DNA of 64,000 nucleotides, taken from sequence record NC_062581.1; one strand, written 5' to 3'. Shown piece after piece: positions 1,318 to 64,000 of this stretch. The stretch's first letter is position 1. The number at the start of each line of letters is the position of its first letter. A program made the translations under genes and the position numbers. The notes beneath the pieces were generated by a model that was given only the letters and a program-made list of their open reading frames with translations, made no database searches and was not told the origin of the DNA.

Positions 1318-3540
1318 ATGAATCTCGATTCACTGTTTAAACACAACGTAGCGAAACAATACACTCGCTTCTCCATGGAAGACTTCCTGGGCAAACTGGA
1401 AACCGAACAGAACTACGCTGACAACCTGCTGGCCAAAGGTAAGAGCCTGGTAGAATACATCAGCCAAGAAAACTTCGGCGACATTAACGAAGCACAACGT
1501 AGCACTGCTGGTGCTCTGTACAAAGATCTCGGTAGCATGCTGAAGACTTTCGGTTTTGAATACTTTGACGAGAAATCGGGCAAAGCACAAATCTCCGAAA
1601 ACCAACAACGCGCTGCTGCTATCGCTGCTATCGCCTGTGCTGATCCAGAAGCTTATAAGAAAGCTCTGCGTTCGGTTGCTAAAGAAGTAGTTTCGAACGA
1701 AGATAACGTCTTCAACGTTCGCCATGAATTTGCTGGTCCTGCTGGTTCCCTGCAAGTATTCCAAGACCACCTGGGTCTGGAAAACTACAACGAAAAATCC
1801 CAACGCGACTTCCGTGTTGTAACTGTTGGTTATAACCTCGAAGCTTCCCGTCAGGACGAGTTCGCTGAACGTCTGTACCCTACTACTGTTGTAAACCCAG
1901 TAGAAGGTGGTGTTGTTCAGGTTCTTCCTTACATCGCTGTAATGAAAGATGTATACCACGCCGTTAGCGGTCAGAAACTGCAAAACGAAGAAGTGAACAT
2001 GGTAGAAGCATACCGTGATCCATCGATCCTGGATGACAACTGCACCGACCTGATCCCTGCTGTTGATCCAGATGGTAGCAACCTGAAGTTCTTCACCGAT
2101 CCTACAGTTGTTCCACACCACGTTGTTACTAACGAACAGAACATGACTATCACCACTGGCCCACTTAAGCCAAACGTGAAAATCGATCTGATGGGTAACT
2201 CGAACGCCAACCTGCTGATCAACAAAGGCATGCTGGACATTTCGGATACTATCGATCCAAGTGGTCGTCTGAAAGCTCTGTACGTCAAGTTCGACGGCAA
2301 GATCATCCGCTTCGTTGTTGACCGTCTGCCTACCGCTGTATTCCAGCCTGGTCTGATCGGCGACACCCGTCAAGCTAAACTGGACTTCATCACTGAAGAC
2401 CTGGTTGTTGGCGAAGACACCAAAGCAATCGACGGTACCGTTTCTGCTAACGTGCAAGAACTGGTTAACCGTAAGTGGACTGCTCGTATCAGCGTTTCGT
2501 TCAACGGCCATGTATCCACTTCCCGTGGTGATGCTCGTTACGGTACTACTGGTATCGAAATCGACCGTATCGTTGACGAAGATCGTAAACTGATCTCGAT
2601 CGAATCTGGCGACGGTAAAGATCTGGTTGACGCCATCGGCGAACTGGAAGTAGTCGGCTACGACCTGGACCTCAAGTTCACCAACACTAACCGCCGTCAG
2701 CGTGGTCACCTGTTGCAAACTCGTGCTATCCAGTTCCGTCACCCAATCCCAATGCACGCTCCGGTAACCCTGCCAATGTCCACTATGGATGAGCAAGGCC
2801 CAGGCGACGTTGTTAAGGCACTGACTGTTAACACCAACATCCGTAACAGCAACAACGCTGTTAAACGTCTGCTGAACTACCTGGCTCAGTTGAAAGAAGT
2901 AGTTGGTAATGGTTACGACCGTCCTAAGTTTGGTGCTGTTGAAGGTGCTCTGAGCATCATGATGCGTCCAACCTACCGTGAAGGCACTCTGCACCTTCCT
3001 GATCACATCGATACCCTGAAATCTCAGGATCGCTGGCAGGACGTTTGCAGCACCATCTTGAACTACGCTAAAGGTATCCTGTTCCCAGCATACCGCGAGT
3101 CCAACATTGAAGCTGCTTTCCGTGTAATCTCGGGTAACCAAGACGAGAAGCCAATGTTCATCTTCGCTACCGACAAAGAAATCGGTAACTACCTGATGAC
3201 CCAAGGCGACGACCGTACTCTGGGCGCAATCCTGGAATACGACCTGGTAACTACCAACAACGAACTGTTCGATGGTAAACTGGTAATCGTTCCTACTCGT
3301 AAGAACCCAACCGAAAACGACATCCTGTCCTTCGGTCAGTTCTTCTACGTATCGACCGTCATCGCCGACCTGCCTATCACTCGTGGTGGCCAGCAAGTGA
3401 CTCGTGAGATCGCAGCTGTTCCGTTCAACCTGCACGTTAACAACATTCCATTCGCTATCAACCTGACCATCACTGGTCTGGAAGAAGTCATGGGCAAATC
3501 TCAGTGGAACAAACCACTGATTTCCGCACTGGCTGCTTGA
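1318..3540 (+). CDS. Major capsid protein (phiKZ gp120-like)
   Basis: 740 aa, extreme high-expression codon bias, strong AAGGA RBS, N-terminal propeptide with SME and GLE maturation motifs; size and synteny fit gp120. Confidence 0.9.
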   Translation: MNLDSLFKHNVAKQYTRFSMEDFLGKLETEQNYADNLLAKGKSLVEYISQENFGDINEAQRSTAGALYKDLGSMLKTFGFEYFDEKSGKAQISENQQRAAAIAAIACADPEAYKKALRSVAKEVVSNEDNVFNVRHEFAGPAGSLQVFQDHLGLENYNEKSQRDFRVVTVGYNLEASRQDEFAERLYPTTVVNPVEGGVVQVLPYIAVMKDVYHAVSGQKLQNEEVNMVEAYRDPSILDDNCTDLIPAVDPDGSNLKFFTDPTVVPHHVVTNEQNMTITTGPLKPNVKIDLMGNSNANLLINKGMLDISDTIDPSGRLKALYVKFDGKIIRFVVDRLPTAVFQPGLIGDTRQAKLDFITEDLVVGEDTKAIDGTVSANVQELVNRKWTARISVSFNGHVSTSRGDARYGTTGIEIDRIVDEDRKLISIESGDGKDLVDAIGELEVVGYDLDLKFTNTNRRQRGHLLQTRAIQFRHPIPMHAPVTLPMSTMDEQGPGDVVKALTVNTNIRNSNNAVKRLLNYLAQLKEVVGNGYDRPKFGAVEGALSIMMRPTYREGTLHLPDHIDTLKSQDRWQDVCSTILNYAKGILFPAYRESNIEAAFRVISGNQDEKPMFIFATDKEIGNYLMTQGDDRTLGAILEYDLVTTNNELFDGKLVIVPTRKNPTENDILSFGQFFYVSTVIADLPITRGGQQVTREIAAVPFNLHVNNIPFAINLTITGLEEVMGKSQWNKPLISALAA

Positions 3541-3624
3541 AGTCAACCGGGAAACGTCCGTCGCTTGGAAGATGGATCAATCCGGTACTCCGAGGACGGT
3601 ACCACCCAGCGGTACCTAGAATGA
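3541..3624 (+). other. In-frame 27-codon extension after the capsid UGA (candidate readthrough product SQPGNVRRLEDGSIRYSEDGTTQRYLE)
   Basis: Same frame as the capsid gene, UGA-A context, no independent start/RBS, lies before the terminator, and its motif matches the C-terminus of 30196..30735. Confidence 0.55.
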
Positions 3625-3626
3625 AA

Positions 3627-3666
3627 GACATAATCGCCTACCCTTCGGGGTAGGCTTTATGTCGTC
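3627..3666. terminator. Hairpin with TATG tail after the capsid gene
   Basis: GACATAATC-GCCTACCC-TTCG-GGGTAGGC-TTTATGTCGTC. Confidence 0.8.
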
Positions 3667-3674
3667 ACTCCAAA

Positions 3675-3698
3675 AAATCTCAGATCTATATTACTATT
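3675..3698 (+). promoter_or_regulatory. Phage early-type promoter, class A
   Basis: AAATCTCAGATCTATATTACTATT, identical to 56758..56781; contains the phiKZ early consensus TATATTAC. Confidence 0.75.
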
Positions 3699-3738
3699 CT
3701 GTAGTTATACCACTAATATAACCCACGAGGTAATCGCT

Positions 3739-4356
3739 ATGGATTATTTTGACCGCTTTGACAAAGTACTCGAAAACAACTTCCATGGTGATTATCGCGC
3801 CATGAAAGATTCCGGTTATCGTTTTGATAGCCTGCAAGGATTACCCTTGCGAATTGTTGAGATAGATCGTCGTCCTAAAAAGGAACCGGTTTATGTCACC
3901 ACACCTGACGTGCAGTTAGATGATGTTATCATACTGCCAGCAGAGGAGCCCACTAATAAAAATGAAGAACTGGATTTCGAAGTAATCGATCTCTCAGCAG
4001 AAATGGATCGTCGGAGAAAAAATACTGGTACAGATAATCCTGTACAACCTGAACCAGTTAGTGAGAATGCTGATTTGAAGCCTCTCGTTTTGTCCGTCAG
4101 ACAGGCGACCAAGCCGTCGTCAAGGGGGGCGGCTATACAAACCCAAACGAGTAAGGCTGCCAAAGATAAACATCTCGCCTCCGGTGGTAACCGAGCCCAG
4201 CGTAGAGCCATCAAAGCGATTAGTCGTAAAGATGGTAAAACGGCAAACAAGGGTCCTCGGGAAAACAGTGATCGAGACAATAGAAGTTCACAAGAAGCCG
4301 ACGCACCGAAACGTGTAAGCTTGAGTGAATTAGATTTCGGGTTTAGGTTGGAATAG
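3739..4356 (+). CDS. Hypothetical protein with basic low-complexity C-terminal half
   Basis: 205 aa, GAGG RBS, first gene after a promoter. Confidence 0.65.
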   Translation: MDYFDRFDKVLENNFHGDYRAMKDSGYRFDSLQGLPLRIVEIDRRPKKEPVYVTTPDVQLDDVIILPAEEPTNKNEELDFEVIDLSAEMDRRRKNTGTDNPVQPEPVSENADLKPLVLSVRQATKPSSRGAAIQTQTSKAAKDKHLASGGNRAQRRAIKAISRKDGKTANKGPRENSDRDNRSSQEADAPKRVSLSELDFGFRLE

Positions 4357-48495: not shown

Positions 48496-49059
48496 ATGTC
48501 TCATTCCAAATCAAAAAGTCTTTCCTCTATTCTGGCAGCTTTGGAAGACAGTGATGGCACAGCACAAGTTGTTGATGTGACTAACGCTACTGCTTCCGCA
48601 ACAAAAGATCACCCAGCTGCTCCTGAAGGTGAAGCTAACTCTGATGGTGTAGCCGCTACGGCAGCTGATACCGTTAAAGTGGGCGATAGTGATATGATTT
48701 CTGCCACTGTGCAAGAAGAAATTGCTAAGGGCGAACAGATCGATCGTGATACCGAAAAGATGTGTGAAGCACAAGCTGCTTGCGAACATCACATTGGTGA
48801 AATCCAAAAGTACATTGATCGTAATGAATCTGTACCTAGTAGCATGGCTAAAGCAATTAAAGTTAGTTTGCTCCGTCATGACAAAAACTTCTTCGCTCAA
48901 ACAGTTCCATCGCTTGAAGCATTTGATGGCTACGTTGGTCGTATGACTGTTTCCCTAGAACTGCTGGATAAATTGAAAGCTGGTTCTAAAGTAATTGGTG
49001 CAGCTATTGTTAGTGCTGCTGAAATGAAAGCTTCGTTGAAAGGTGCTAAACATGGCTAA
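48496..49059 (+). CDS. Internal head protein, paralogue A
   Basis: Acidic propeptide; ALE and PSLEAF motifs; VPSLEAFD core shared with neighbours. Confidence 0.7.
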   Translation: MSHSKSKSLSSILAALEDSDGTAQVVDVTNATASATKDHPAAPEGEANSDGVAATAADTVKVGDSDMISATVQEEIAKGEQIDRDTEKMCEAQAACEHHIGEIQKYIDRNESVPSSMAKAIKVSLLRHDKNFFAQTVPSLEAFDGYVGRMTVSLELLDKLKAGSKVIGAAIVSAAEMKASLKGAKHG

Positions 49060-49594
49060 GGGTAAATTCACAAAACTGTTGGCTCGGATTAGCAATGAAT
49101 CTGAAGACGGTGTTGCACATCCAGTTGATGTAAAAGAAACTAGTGCTGAACTGGCTAAACCAGAACTTAAAACTTCTGAAGACGATGGTTCGGATAAAGG
49201 TCAGATTGAAGAAGCACATCAAAATGTAGATGCCGGTGGTAAAGACTACACCGCTATTGATGAAGCATCTAAACGTCAAGGCGAAGTTATTCACAAACAA
49301 CTGGAACGTCTACAAGAGACTTCGGGTTCTTTGGAAGCTTACATTGAAATCGTAGAAGAATCTAGCAAAGCTAAAACCAGCATTGGTTCTGGTGCGGCTG
49401 CTGTCATTCAACATGATCTGGTTTCTCGTTACCCTAAGTTCTTTGATAAAGTAGTTCCTTCAGTAGAAGCTTTTGATATGGCTACCGGTCGTGACACTAC
49501 TGTTGCTTTGGGTGTTACTCTAAATAAGAAGCTGACCCAAGTTAAAGCGAACATTGAAAAGAAAAAAGATCGTCTGGCTACATTAGCAAAGTAA
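49052..49594 (+). CDS. Internal head protein, paralogue B
   Basis: Start ATG 49052; SNE, SLEAY and PSVEAF motifs. Confidence 0.7.
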   Translation: MAKGKFTKLLARISNESEDGVAHPVDVKETSAELAKPELKTSEDDGSDKGQIEEAHQNVDAGGKDYTAIDEASKRQGEVIHKQLERLQETSGSLEAYIEIVEESSKAKTSIGSGAAAVIQHDLVSRYPKFFDKVVPSVEAFDMATGRDTTVALGVTLNKKLTQVKANIEKKKDRLATLAK

Positions 49595-49611
49595 CTGCCT
49601 CCCAGGAGGCA
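49588..49611 (+). promoter_or_regulatory. Candidate -1 frameshift signal: A_AAG, UAA, then a GC hairpin
   Basis: GC-A-AAG-TAA-C-TGCCTC-CCAG-GAGGCA; the -1 frame is open into 49645..49929. Confidence 0.5.
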
Positions 49612-49644
49612 TACACCGAAGGCCCGGACAGTACGTTTACACAC

Positions 49645-49929
49645 ATGGGTAAAACCTACAGTGTTGACCGCTTATTAGAACTTACACGTAACACACCCGT
49701 TGTTCAATTTCCGGTTATGAAACTGGGTTGGATGATTGATGATGATTACGATGCTAAAAGAATGCGGGCAGCTGACACATCGGTTCCTATCTGCATCTAC
49801 CAACTACCAAAATCAGGTGCTTGGGTTTCTATGGATGGATACCATCGTGTTATCAAAGCGATCTATGTTGAAAGACGTGAAACTATTCCAGCTAAGATAG
49901 TTACCGAACAAATGTTCAAACAGCTTTAA
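49645..49929 (+). CDS. ParB/Sulfiredoxin-like domain (frame open upstream from 49558; probably translated as a fusion)
   Basis: PICI...WVSMDGYHRVIKA...IPAKIV; no RBS near ATG 49645. Confidence 0.65.
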   Translation: MGKTYSVDRLLELTRNTPVVQFPVMKLGWMIDDDYDAKRMRAADTSVPICIYQLPKSGAWVSMDGYHRVIKAIYVERRETIPAKIVTEQMFKQL

Positions 49930-49940
49930 CCAATATATTC

Positions 49941-49968
49941 GGTTGGTACTTCGGTACCAACCTTATGT
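49941..49968 (+). terminator. Hairpin with TATG tail
   Basis: GGTTGGTAC-TTCG-GTACCAACC-TTATGT. Confidence 0.75.
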
Positions 49969-49995
49969 AACTTTAATCCGCGGAGTAACAAACAC

Positions 49996-63385: not shown

Positions 63386-63393
63386 GTTAACGC

Positions 63394-64000
63394 ATGTACG
63401 CAGGACGACGTACTGCTGGGCGACGTTCCCAACCAAGGTTACGGATCAGATCAGTTACATCTAAAGTAGCTGCACTTTCCAAACCTAAACGTTTACGACG
63501 TTCAGCTTCATCTTGCATTCCCCACAGAGTAGTAGGGTTGATGGTCATCTCGTTAGATTCAAAGTTCTCAAGTGCAGGAGAATTGTGTTTACCTGCTACG
63601 TAGATGCCACCTTCACCAACGAAGTCCCAAGTAGAGATTTCACGGGTGTACTTAATACCACGCATTACGTCGTCTTGTGTAATCGAACGTACGGAGCAAT
63701 AAGTATTGATGTGTGGATTGGTAATGGAGTCTTGGAATATTTTTGCGTAAGGACCGTAAGGTTTAACTTCAGCAATAACCAACTTACAAGGACGACCTTG
63801 TTCATCTTTACCATCAACAATAGTCAATGCACGGATGTGCGCACAAACTCGATCATCGTCGATCTTACGAATACGTTGAAGGTACTCGCGATCATCCATA
63901 GGTTTCCGAAACTTACGACCATCAATAAGCAAATCGGTAAACGGTTCAGGATGTTTAAACTCCATATACAGCACGTTCTTAAGCAAACGGCGCATCAGTG
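63394..64000 (-). CDS. Prohead (head maturation) protease, phiKZ gp175/T4 gp21 fold; N-terminus outside the window
   Basis: MEFKHP, VCAHI (His), CSVRS (Ser), TWDFV; self-cleavage-type ALE and GLE sites near the C-terminus. Confidence 0.85.

Follow-up and report, generated by a model that had tools for sequence, protein, structure and literature searches.

The window analyzed here, a 64,000-nucleotide (nt) stretch of sequence record NC_062581.1, was found to be 100% identical to Pseudomonas phage Psa21 (NC_062581.1/MK552327.1), a 305-kb phiKZ-like jumbo phage of the genus Tepukevirus; all coordinates below are window coordinates, to which 124000 is added to obtain those of the record. The locus under study consists of the end of gp218, a 50-nt 'intergenic' gap, and gp219, which is annotated as a 'hypothetical protein'. 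An earlier reading of the letters of this DNA (the original prediction) had proposed that a programmed −1 frameshift at the end of gp218 fuses a protease-releasable ParB/sulfiredoxin (Srx)-like domain to an internal head protein (IP). The locus was compared among 11 genomes, namely Psa21, the isolates D6 and RVTF4, the IMG/VR contigs L009-L012, and the metagenome contigs L014, L016, L019, and L022, and counts given out of 11 refer to this set. All 11 are independent genomes and share one layout, an internal-head-protein gene followed by a small open reading frame (ORF) in the −1 frame, and the two ORFs are separate genes in all deposited annotations (GenBank/RefSeq for Psa21, D6, and RVTF4). 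The comparison indicates that a conserved slip very probably fuses a ParB/sulfiredoxin-fold domain to the internal head protein in Psa21 and its ten relatives. The features at the gene boundary, with protein lengths in amino acids (aa), are as follows.

49052..49594, + strand: gp218, the carrier gene, 180 aa; a short paralogue of phiKZ-type internal head/ejection proteins and the 0-frame product
49588-49591, + strand: shift site A_AAG, followed by the 0-frame stop TAA at 49592-49594
49591..49929, + strand: −1-frame extension, 112 codons plus TAA, in a −1 frame without stops in 11/11 genomes
49596-49611, + strand: local hairpin UGCCUC-CCAG-GAGGCA, 4 nt 3' of the shift site, −10.2 kcal/mol when folded alone
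49645..49929, + strand: gp219 in its annotated form, 94 aa; the gene model is truncated at the N-terminus

Slip site, gap, and true start of the gp219 domain

The original prediction had read gp218 as ending in TTA GCA AAG TAA with an A_AAG tetramer at 49588-49591, and the −1 frame as open from 49558 into the ParB-like ORF; both statements were borne out by direct reading. In Psa21 the −1 frame reads KEKRSSGYISKVTASQEAYTEGPDSTFTHMGKTYSVDRLL...DGYHR... (also ...ISKVTASQEAYTEGPDSTFTHMGKTYSV...DGYHR...) and ends with the TAA at 49927-49929. Across the 11 genomes this frame opens 10-64 nt upstream of the 0-frame stop (10 nt in L010 and L016, 16 nt in RVTF4 and L011), and no ATG, GTG, or TTG was found in it before the position of the annotated ATG of Psa21. 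The predicted trans-frame product is 292 aa long with the junction ...LATLAK-VTASQE..., and its predicted tryptic junction peptide is VTASQEAYTEGPDSTFTHMGK. The last codons of each carrier gene and the slippery motif within them are listed here.

Psa21: GCA AAG TAA, motif A_AAG
D6: GGA AAG TAA, motif G_GGA_AAG
RVTF4: CCA AAG TAA, motif C_CCA_AAG
L009: AAA AAG TAG, motif A_AAA_AAG
L010: TCA AAG TAA, motif A_AAG
L011: GCA AAG TAA, motif A_AAG
L012: GAA AAG TAA, motif A_AAG
L014: GGG AAG TAA, motif G_GGG_AAG
L016: GGA AAG AAG TAA, motif G_GGA_AAG, one codon before the last
L019: AAA AAA TAA, motif A_AAA_AAA
L022: GGA AAG TAA, motif G_GGA_AAG

The motifs comprise A_AAG in four genomes, G_GGA_AAG in three, and C_CCA_AAG, A_AAA_AAG, A_AAA_AAA, and G_GGG_AAG in one each. 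The stop codon directly follows the slippery site in 10 of the 11 genomes and comes one codon later in L016, and the last residue of the carrier is Lys in every genome (codon AAG in ten, AAA in one). Since the C-terminal tails of the carriers (LATLAK, IRAEGK, NMTAPK, LTKLKK, GVEDSK, and others) and their lengths are otherwise unrelated, the conserved Lys codon and its 5' neighbor are not due to protein conservation. The distance from the 0-frame stop to the Tyr codon of a conserved motif, described below, is exactly 20 nt in 11/11. In Escherichia coli, no tetramer is more shift-prone than A_AAG, and the top three −1 heptamers by efficiency are C_CCA_AAG, G_GGA_AAG, and A_AAA_AAG (PMC4066793; PMC5009743). 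The sites have the slippery Z_ZZN tetramer or X_XXZ_ZZN heptamer of bacterial programmed −1 frameshifts, imperfectly so in L014; the downstream −1 ORF overlaps the site by the 10-64 nt given above, is without a start of its own, and encodes a conserved protein; and the site is kept in all genomes beyond the needs of the 0-frame protein. The frameshift of the original prediction is supported by this comparison, in which a shift-prone site lies at the stop or one codon before it in 11 independent assemblies, and on these grounds we regard a programmed −1 frameshift that loads the phage head in a Gag-Pol-like manner as likely.

The original prediction had also offered an alternative, an A missing from the A6 run at 49562-49567, and more generally the frame break could be an assembly error, a recent mutation, or a pseudogenized in-frame fusion. 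In Psa21 alone this can be entertained, as one A added to that run joins the frames and the −1 frame is open from 49558. Two findings refute the missing A. The A6 run is not conserved, and in RVTF4, L010, L011, and L016 a −1-frame stop stands only 10-16 nt ahead of the 0-frame stop, where an indel farther upstream could not bring the frames together. The same −1 relation and 20-nt spacing recur in eleven independent isolates and metagenome assemblies, and both ORFs remain under purifying selection. We give an artefact or decayed fusion practically no weight, less than any other explanation considered.

Slippage of the phage RNA polymerase (RNAP) on an A run could likewise make the fusion. The shift site holds A7 in L019 and A6 in L009, and the A6 run of Psa21 lies ~25 nt upstream of the site in the open −1 frame, but in most genomes the run at the site is just A3 (GCA AAG, TCA AAG, GGA AAG, CCA AAG), which is far shorter than the runs known for productive RNAP slippage. 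Moreover, the conserved order of X_XXA_AAG and then a stop is a signature of the ribosome, and we consider transcriptional slippage most improbable. Ribosomal frameshifting and transcriptional slippage are both reviewed in PMC5009743.

The gap between the two annotated genes was then read in the −1 frame. Over the 18 codons from the slip site to the annotated ATG, the differences summed over all genome pairs fall on codon positions 1, 2, and 3 in the numbers 164, 180, and 506, and over the ten codons from Y to H of the conserved motif in the numbers 48, 70, and 299, and the other two frames carry stops within the gap in nearly all 11 genomes. Judged by this pattern, the 'intergenic' 50 nt evolve as −1-frame coding sequence. 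The gap encodes Y-x-E-G-x-x-S-T-x-T-H, a motif found nearly without variation at the N-terminus of free-standing homologues of the domain, which begin 0-30 residues before its Y (phage EL gp75, Huxley gp11, and Xoo-sp14 gp29). In alignments of 7, 9, and 31 sequences, Y2, E4, S8, and T9 are invariant or nearly so, and all four lie upstream of the annotated Met of Psa21.

These data bear on the possibility that gp219 is an independent 94-aa gene initiated at ATG 49645, with the spacer conserved for a non-coding reason. GenBank and RefSeq give this gene model for Psa21, D6, and RVTF4, and 7/11 genomes have an ATG at the position. The codon is CAA in L009, L014, and L016 and GAA in L019, and since the annotated ATG is thus absent in 4/11 genomes, initiation there is not the conserved route. 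As the original prediction had noted and direct reading confirmed, no Shine-Dalgarno (SD)-like sequence occurs in the 20 nt before ATG 49645, and no ATG, GTG, or TTG lies at a usable distance from the AGGAGG at 49604-49609, within the hairpin, which in the alignment is specific to Psa21. In the AlphaFold2 model of the domain, β-strand 1 spans residues 9-12 and ends at M12, the annotated start, so a protein initiated at this ATG would lose three of the four β1 residues. Together with the third-position bias, the open −1 frame, and the nearly invariant family motif encoded by the spacer, these points leave an independent gp219 with a very small share of the probability.

Alternatively, the full-length domain could be made unfused, if ribosomes initiated at a non-canonical codon or terminated at the gp218 stop and then reinitiated. 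In favor of this, an ATT lies in frame at 49582 in Psa21, an ATG comes immediately behind an S-L-E motif in L019, and ribosomes could be held by the AGGAGG at 49604-49609. Against this, the −1 leader contains no shared ATG, GTG, TTG, CTG, or ATH, with none at all in RVTF4 (CAT GAC CGC CCC AAA GTA...) or L010; the AGGAGG is found in Psa21 alone; and the invariant slippery Lys codon and the S-x-E motif described below would be left unexplained. Unfused synthesis is thus highly unlikely. The four rivals each fail on the comparative data, by which the shift site, the coding nature of the gap, and the missing start are established, and the programmed frameshift is taken up again below as the preferred reading.

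Carrier, joint, and cargo

The carrier and cargo parts of the trans-frame product were searched separately. The carrier gp218 matches PHROG 8282, 'internal head protein', with E = 1.5e-6, and the neighboring gp217 matches this family as well; gp218 has no Pfam match, for which it is too short. The first ~150 residues of gp218 and gp217 align with orthologues of 451-471 aa from D6, RVTF4, and metagenomic relatives. The Pfam family phiKZ_IP (PF12699) was detected in the orthologues of L014, L016, and L022 and in the next gene of Psa21, gp220, and gp218 sits within a run of IP genes. Every carrier, whatever its length between 180 and 471 aa, retains the N-terminal ~140 aa and the shift site. All carriers share an N-terminus of the type MAK-K----L---S-E/SEDG (the slash marks the division within the motif), which resembles the processed N-termini of SPN3US gp53 and gp54 (PMC5694885), and all have FF-x6-S-[LV]-E at residues ~135-151. 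The S/A/G-X-E motifs associated with gp218, SNE16, SVE139, and the junction SQE, are positionally conserved. Only 41 residues follow the S-[LV]-E site in Psa21 and L009, and 202 follow it in L019. As the short carriers keep the joint, the C-terminal ~300 carrier residues are dispensable for its selection, whereas the N-terminal region and the slip site are not.

Both gp217 and gp218 (48496-49594) are short in Psa21, at 187 and 180 aa, compared with ~455-470 aa in D6, RVTF4, L014, and L016. The pair measures 187 and 461 aa in L022; in L009 the second paralogue is short, and L019 encodes only one carrier, of 341 aa. Given this variation, C-terminal truncation of IP paralogues is frequent, with the N-terminal ~140 aa always kept. 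The gp217 stop overlaps the gp218 start at 49052-49059 (ATGGCTAA), which suggests translational coupling of the IP paralogues.

The features relevant to processing and to the cargo are the following.

49460..49468, + strand: S-V-E codons of FF-x6-S-[LV]-E, probable propeptide cleavage site (cleavage predicted)
49600..49608, + strand: S-Q-E codons, predicted prohead-protease site at the carrier/cargo joint
49609..49926, + strand: predicted mature 106-aa ParB/Srx-fold domain, AYTEGPDSTFTH...DGYHR...KQL
63390..64000, − strand: homologue of the phiKZ gp175 head protease, running off the window end

From the slipped Lys to the family motif, every genome encodes V/I-x-x-S-x-E-x, with S and E kept in 11/11 and Q, N, V, K, T, or L between them. 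The S-x-E lies one residue before the Y of the motif, where the free-standing homologues begin. The phiKZ prohead protease gp175 cuts after S/A/G-X-E and the 201phi2-1 enzyme after S/A/G/T-X-E, at sites that include SQE, SLE, and SVE (PMC5694885; PMC9026906). The gp175 homologue in the window was identified by tblastn with 60% identity over residues 74-270 and E = 1.6e-77, the phiKZ gp175 query having been taken from L028. A cut after S-Q-E would leave an N-terminus beginning AYTEGPDSTFTH..., matching the free-standing homologues, and would yield the predicted semi-tryptic peptide AYTEGPDSTFTHMGK; on the strength of the motif and its position, we infer cleavage at the joint. The original prediction had recognized S-Q-E among the first new-frame residues as a head-protease motif, and this holds up, given S-x-E in 11/11 genomes and a gp175-type protease gene in the window. 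Its description of a protease-releasable domain on an internal head protein is likewise supported by the comparison, through the position of S-x-E, the identity of the carrier as a phiKZ_IP paralogue, and the gp175-type gene, all three of which are established at this level.

The 106-aa domain was modeled with AlphaFold2 at a predicted local distance difference test (pLDDT) score of 88.3 and a predicted template modeling (pTM) score of 0.77. In a Foldseek search of the Protein Data Bank (PDB), all of the top ~48 matches belong to the ParB/Srx superfamily (best E = 2.4e-4; template modeling scores of 0.4-0.55), and they include plant and human sulfiredoxin, Noc, CTP-bound ParB, PadC, SbnI, KorB, and the free serine kinase SerK. 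A BFVD search agrees, and the UniProt label of the truncated Psa21 protein is 'ParB/Sulfiredoxin domain-containing'. In sequence-profile searches against the PDB, the SbnI N-domain was matched with E = 2.5e-4, the invariant D-G-x-H-R being aligned to DGVHR. D76, G77, H79, and R80 are invariant in 31 sequences and form a motif of the phosphate-binding-Arg G-x-x-R type. No Pfam match was obtained for the Psa21 domain or six relatives at E up to 1, including ParB_N, ParBc_2, and DdrB-ParB, and no NCBIfam family scored above threshold for these sequences; a Ralstonia phage RP12 protein gave a sub-threshold ParBc_2 match of 17 bits against a cut-off of 23.6. The ParB-like nature of the domain, as originally predicted, is supported by the pLDDT 88 model, the Foldseek matches, and the SbnI profile match, and on this modeling and comparison the ParB/Srx fold is established, the relationship to ParB holding at the level of fold and profile only. 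The cargo would probably act early, as a nucleotide-dependent enzyme or switch.

A chromosome or plasmid partition ParB was considered and rejected: no helix-turn-helix (HTH) or dimerization domain follows the 106-aa domain, which is why it is not a partition ParB, and its neighbors are head proteins. The homologues Huxley gp11 (L004) and Xoo-sp14 gp29 (L007) are annotated as 'chromosome partitioning protein ParB' and consist of an N-terminal-type domain of ~110 aa only. This label on homologues is probably misleading.

The domain matches PHROG 17560, which is listed as 'unknown function'. An exhaustive profile search at E <= 0.001 returned 3085 cluster representatives, most of ~110-125 aa, for which no Pfam model exists, and tblastn located the domain in 43 phage records. 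Free-standing proteins of 110-120 aa include EL gp75, gp11 of the Erwinia phages Huxley and Machina, and gp29 of Xanthomonas phage Xoo-sp14. The closest free-standing group, L013 (3001-3348) with P0011-P0014, shows 61-66% identity, carries an AAGAGG of its own, and starts at an ATG six codons ahead of the Y. The L013 gene has small genes without Pfam matches as its neighbors instead of an IP cluster. A move of the gene from an early-type setting into the head module, or the opposite, may have taken place.

The domain was also found on other head or virion carriers. In the Ralstonia phages RP12, RP31, and FLC1-1B it forms, in frame, the C-terminus of a protein of 664-671 aa, whose first 550 residues share homology with phiKZ gp180 and with subunits that carry the annotation virion RNA polymerase. 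Two of these in-frame fusions are located as follows.

L025 (RP12), 1836-3830: in-frame fusion
L027 (FLC1-1B), 824-2839: in-frame fusion

The Ralstonia joints read ...NALE/GYQEE... and ...AAVE/VYQEH... (slash at the joint), with A-x-E one residue before the Y. In distant metagenomic members of the family, fusions join the domain to a portal protein with InPase (P0070), to MuF (P0063), to a GH19 lysozyme with ParB_N (P0050), and to an Rpb1-like RNAP (P0123), and in phage PA5oct the domain makes up the C-terminal half of a 249-aa protein that was detected in virions by mass spectrometry (MS). The original prediction had looked to orthologous loci for a conserved A_AAG with its hairpin or for natural fusions; the slippery site is kept in 11/11, the hairpin is not conserved, and no natural in-frame IP-domain fusion was found among the 19 multi-domain proteins scanned with Pfam or PHROGs, drawn from the best 150 representatives.

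Between the cargo ORF and the next IP gene lies one further conserved element.

49941..49985, + strand: conserved cassette, hairpin GGTTGGTAC-TTCG-GTACCAACC, then TTATGTAACTTTAATCCGCGGAG; upstream of the next IP gene

The stem and tail of the cassette are near-identical in 11/11 genomes, with appreciable variation only in the loop, and are far more conserved than the flanking coding sequence. The original prediction had placed a terminator after the ParB-like domain; its hairpin (49941-49962) is indeed strong and conserved, with a 9-bp stem, but it has no U-run and was not called by a terminator scan. We infer that the cassette may combine a transcript-end hairpin with an SD and, given its TATG, a phage promoter. 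Within the window, the full 19-mer of the cassette is present just once. The 10-mer GGTACCAACC, with at most one mismatch, has 12 sites in the window, including 21827 and 49953, compared with ~3 expected from shuffles. A scan of the window found no tRNA genes.

Stimulators and the proposed route into the head

The GC hairpin that the original prediction placed 4 nt after the tetramer is present, and L009 has AGUCUC-GAAA-GAGACU at the equivalent place, with two pairs changed on both sides. Nothing comparable to the Psa21 hairpin was seen in D6, L010, or L016. In dinucleotide shuffles the Psa21 hairpin is not more stable than expected (z = −0.95), and resampling of synonymous codons gave p = 0.07 in Psa21, L009, and L014 and 0.17-0.98 in the rest, with none significant. 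Structures 3' of the site in single-sequence folds of the individual genomes are heterogeneous, from −1.9 to −13.3 kcal/mol. The sole helix predicted by RNAalifold has −3 kcal/mol, lies ~45 nt downstream, and shows one covarying pair. A role for the hairpin as a conserved stimulatory element was rejected, as there is no consensus structure and no significant resampling result, and the part of the prediction that gave it that role did not stand; in Psa21 it is possibly a lineage-specific stimulator. The only 3' feature shared across the genomes is the stop codon. The adjacent stop may act as a 'shifty stop', an effect reportedly described by Weiss et al. in 1987 (cited in PMC5009743).

Several observations weigh against a productive programmed frameshift. 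Four genomes, including Psa21, have the tetramer only, and with G_GGG_AAG in L014 the re-pairing of Lys-tRNA with GAA is imperfect. RNAalifold, run on the 11 sequences, found no structure adjoining the shift site, and an upstream SD-like stimulator was not found in the 11-genome alignment. In E. coli, A_AAG and V_VVA_AAG sites that lack a stimulator have shift rates of only ~0.1-4% (PMC4066793), and given this low rate and the lack of a conserved stimulator, the yield could be very low; a rate of ~0.1-4% would fit a low-copy cargo. The ATG inside the domain in seven genomes makes some truncated product possible, and the ATG directly after S-L-E makes independent initiation possible in L019. 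Some proteins on the PA5oct MS list are regarded by its authors as unrelated to the virion (PMC7318152). For Psa21 and its close relatives, no trans-frame peptide, ribosome footprint, virion proteome, or reporter result was found in the literature.

With these points taken into account, the preferred programmed frameshift would proceed as follows. Most ribosomes would stop at TAA 49592 and release gp218. A minority would slip by −1, the peptidyl-tRNA-Lys on AAG (49589-49591) re-pairing with AAA (49588-49590) while the adjacent stop, and in Psa21 perhaps the hairpin 4 nt downstream, slows the ribosome. The slipped ribosomes would read GTA ACT GCC TCC CAG GAG and continue into the gp219 ORF, making gp218-VTASQE-(106-aa ParB/Srx-fold domain), the 292-aa product. 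The N-terminal propeptide region of gp218, which all the paralogues have in common, would bring this fusion into the prohead alongside the abundant unshifted protein, where the gp175-type prohead protease would cut after S-V-E139 and after the junction S-Q-E to give a free 106-aa domain. The freed domain would stay in the head at a copy number set by the efficiency of shifting, would probably be ejected with the DNA, and would act early as a nucleotide-dependent enzyme or switch.

Prohead targeting, cleavage, and ejection are proposed because of the conserved motifs, the protease gene, the parallel in-frame fusions, and the precedent of T4 capsid-targeting sequence (CTS) and IPIII fusions (PMC9026906); the shifting itself and its efficiency, retention in the head, and the biochemical activity of the domain are likewise put forward as predictions. 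The complete scheme, in which a nucleotide-dependent effector is dosed in a Gag-Pol-like manner, released in the prohead, injected at the same time as the genome and the virion RNA polymerase, and active in the first minutes of infection, is more tentative, and we would put its chances a little under even. Early targets might be, for example, host or phage DNA or nucleotides, defense, or the support of early transcription.

Known systems and biological meaning

The general design is like that of retroviral and totiviral Gag-Pol, in which a −1 slip at the end of an abundant particle protein adds an enzyme at a set ratio, with release by a protease. In Gag-Pol, the structural part carries the fusion into the particle and the viral protease frees the enzyme. 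Gag-Pol belongs to eukaryotic RNA viruses and uses strong 3' stimulators, whereas Psa21 has a double-stranded DNA (dsDNA) genome, bacterial translation, an A_AAG-type site with a stop, and a 106-aa cargo of ParB/Srx fold. Frameshift expression of HIV-1 Gag-Pol is treated in PMC4373837.

Phage lambda G/GT is similar in that a low-level −1 slip occurs near the 3' end of a gene of the structural module, at G_GGA_AAG, the same site as in D6, L016, and L022. The short and extended lambda products are made at ~30:1 with no strong known stimulator, and the arrangement is conserved in long-tailed dsDNA phages (PMC5009743). It differs in serving the tail, not the head. Neither gpG nor gpGT is found in virions, the added T domain works as an assembly adaptor and has no enzyme-like fold, and the joint lacks a protease site. 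The motifs A_AAG and A_AAA_AAG and the slip of the Lys tRNA from AAG to AAA are shared with the IS3 family and dnaX (PMC4066793). IS3, IS911, and dnaX have defined pseudoknot, hairpin, or SD stimulators, whereas in the Psa21 clade none is conserved and the 3' neighbor is a stop codon.

With the internal proteins and CTS of T4, the locus would share an N-terminal propeptide that targets the prohead core, a protease that cuts after Glu, and delivery of the cargo to the host. Foreign proteins fused to engineered T4 IPIII or CTS were packaged, released by the protease, and delivered into cells, at 20-200 per head (PMC9026906). In T4, unlike Psa21, the cargo is fused in frame or has its own CTS, and no recoding is involved. 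Polyvalent proteins with a DdrB-like ParB also resemble the present case, with a ParB/Srx-fold module on MuF, portal, lysozyme, or virion RNAP carriers; they were described by Iyer, Burroughs, Anand, de Souza, and Aravind in 2017 and are predicted to be packaged, processed, and injected (PMC5512222). Each of them is one polypeptide encoded in a single frame, in many cases processed by an MPTase domain of its own, whereas in Psa21 the carrier and cargo are in two frames and release by the prohead protease is predicted. By their definition as one polypeptide that unites several effector domains with a virion-anchoring domain, P0063, P0070, P0050, and P0123 are polyvalent proteins and the Psa21 pair is not. 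No mention of a frameshift at this locus was found in the literature on Psa21, D6, PA5oct, SPN3US, the phiKZ atlas, or polyvalent proteins. Programmed −1 frameshifting, ParB/Srx domains in virion-delivered proteins, and propeptide loading of heads are each known separately, and their combination was not found described.

The comparison has a direct consequence for annotation, as it corrects the gene models of gp219 and its orthologues, which are now truncated and labeled 'hypothetical' or 'ParB'. It also adds a case of head-gene recoding without a conserved RNA stimulator, consisting of a slippery site and a stop only. PHROG 17560, with its ~3000 cluster representatives, emerges as a family that is repeatedly joined to head or virion proteins, by predicted frameshift (IP) or in frame (virion RNAP, portal, MuF), and this recurrent joining to virion carriers points to a function in early infection. 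Nucleus-forming jumbo phages pack and eject dozens of head proteins, and how cargo is selected and dosed is largely unknown. A frameshift with a protease site at the joint would offer a concrete and testable mechanism for loading, dosing, and release in jumbo phage heads, in which the N-terminal ~140 residues of the carrier are a candidate capsid-targeting signal. If this is true, the ~140-aa IP N-terminus together with the S-x-E linker would constitute a portable module for capsid targeting and release in nucleus-forming jumbo phages.

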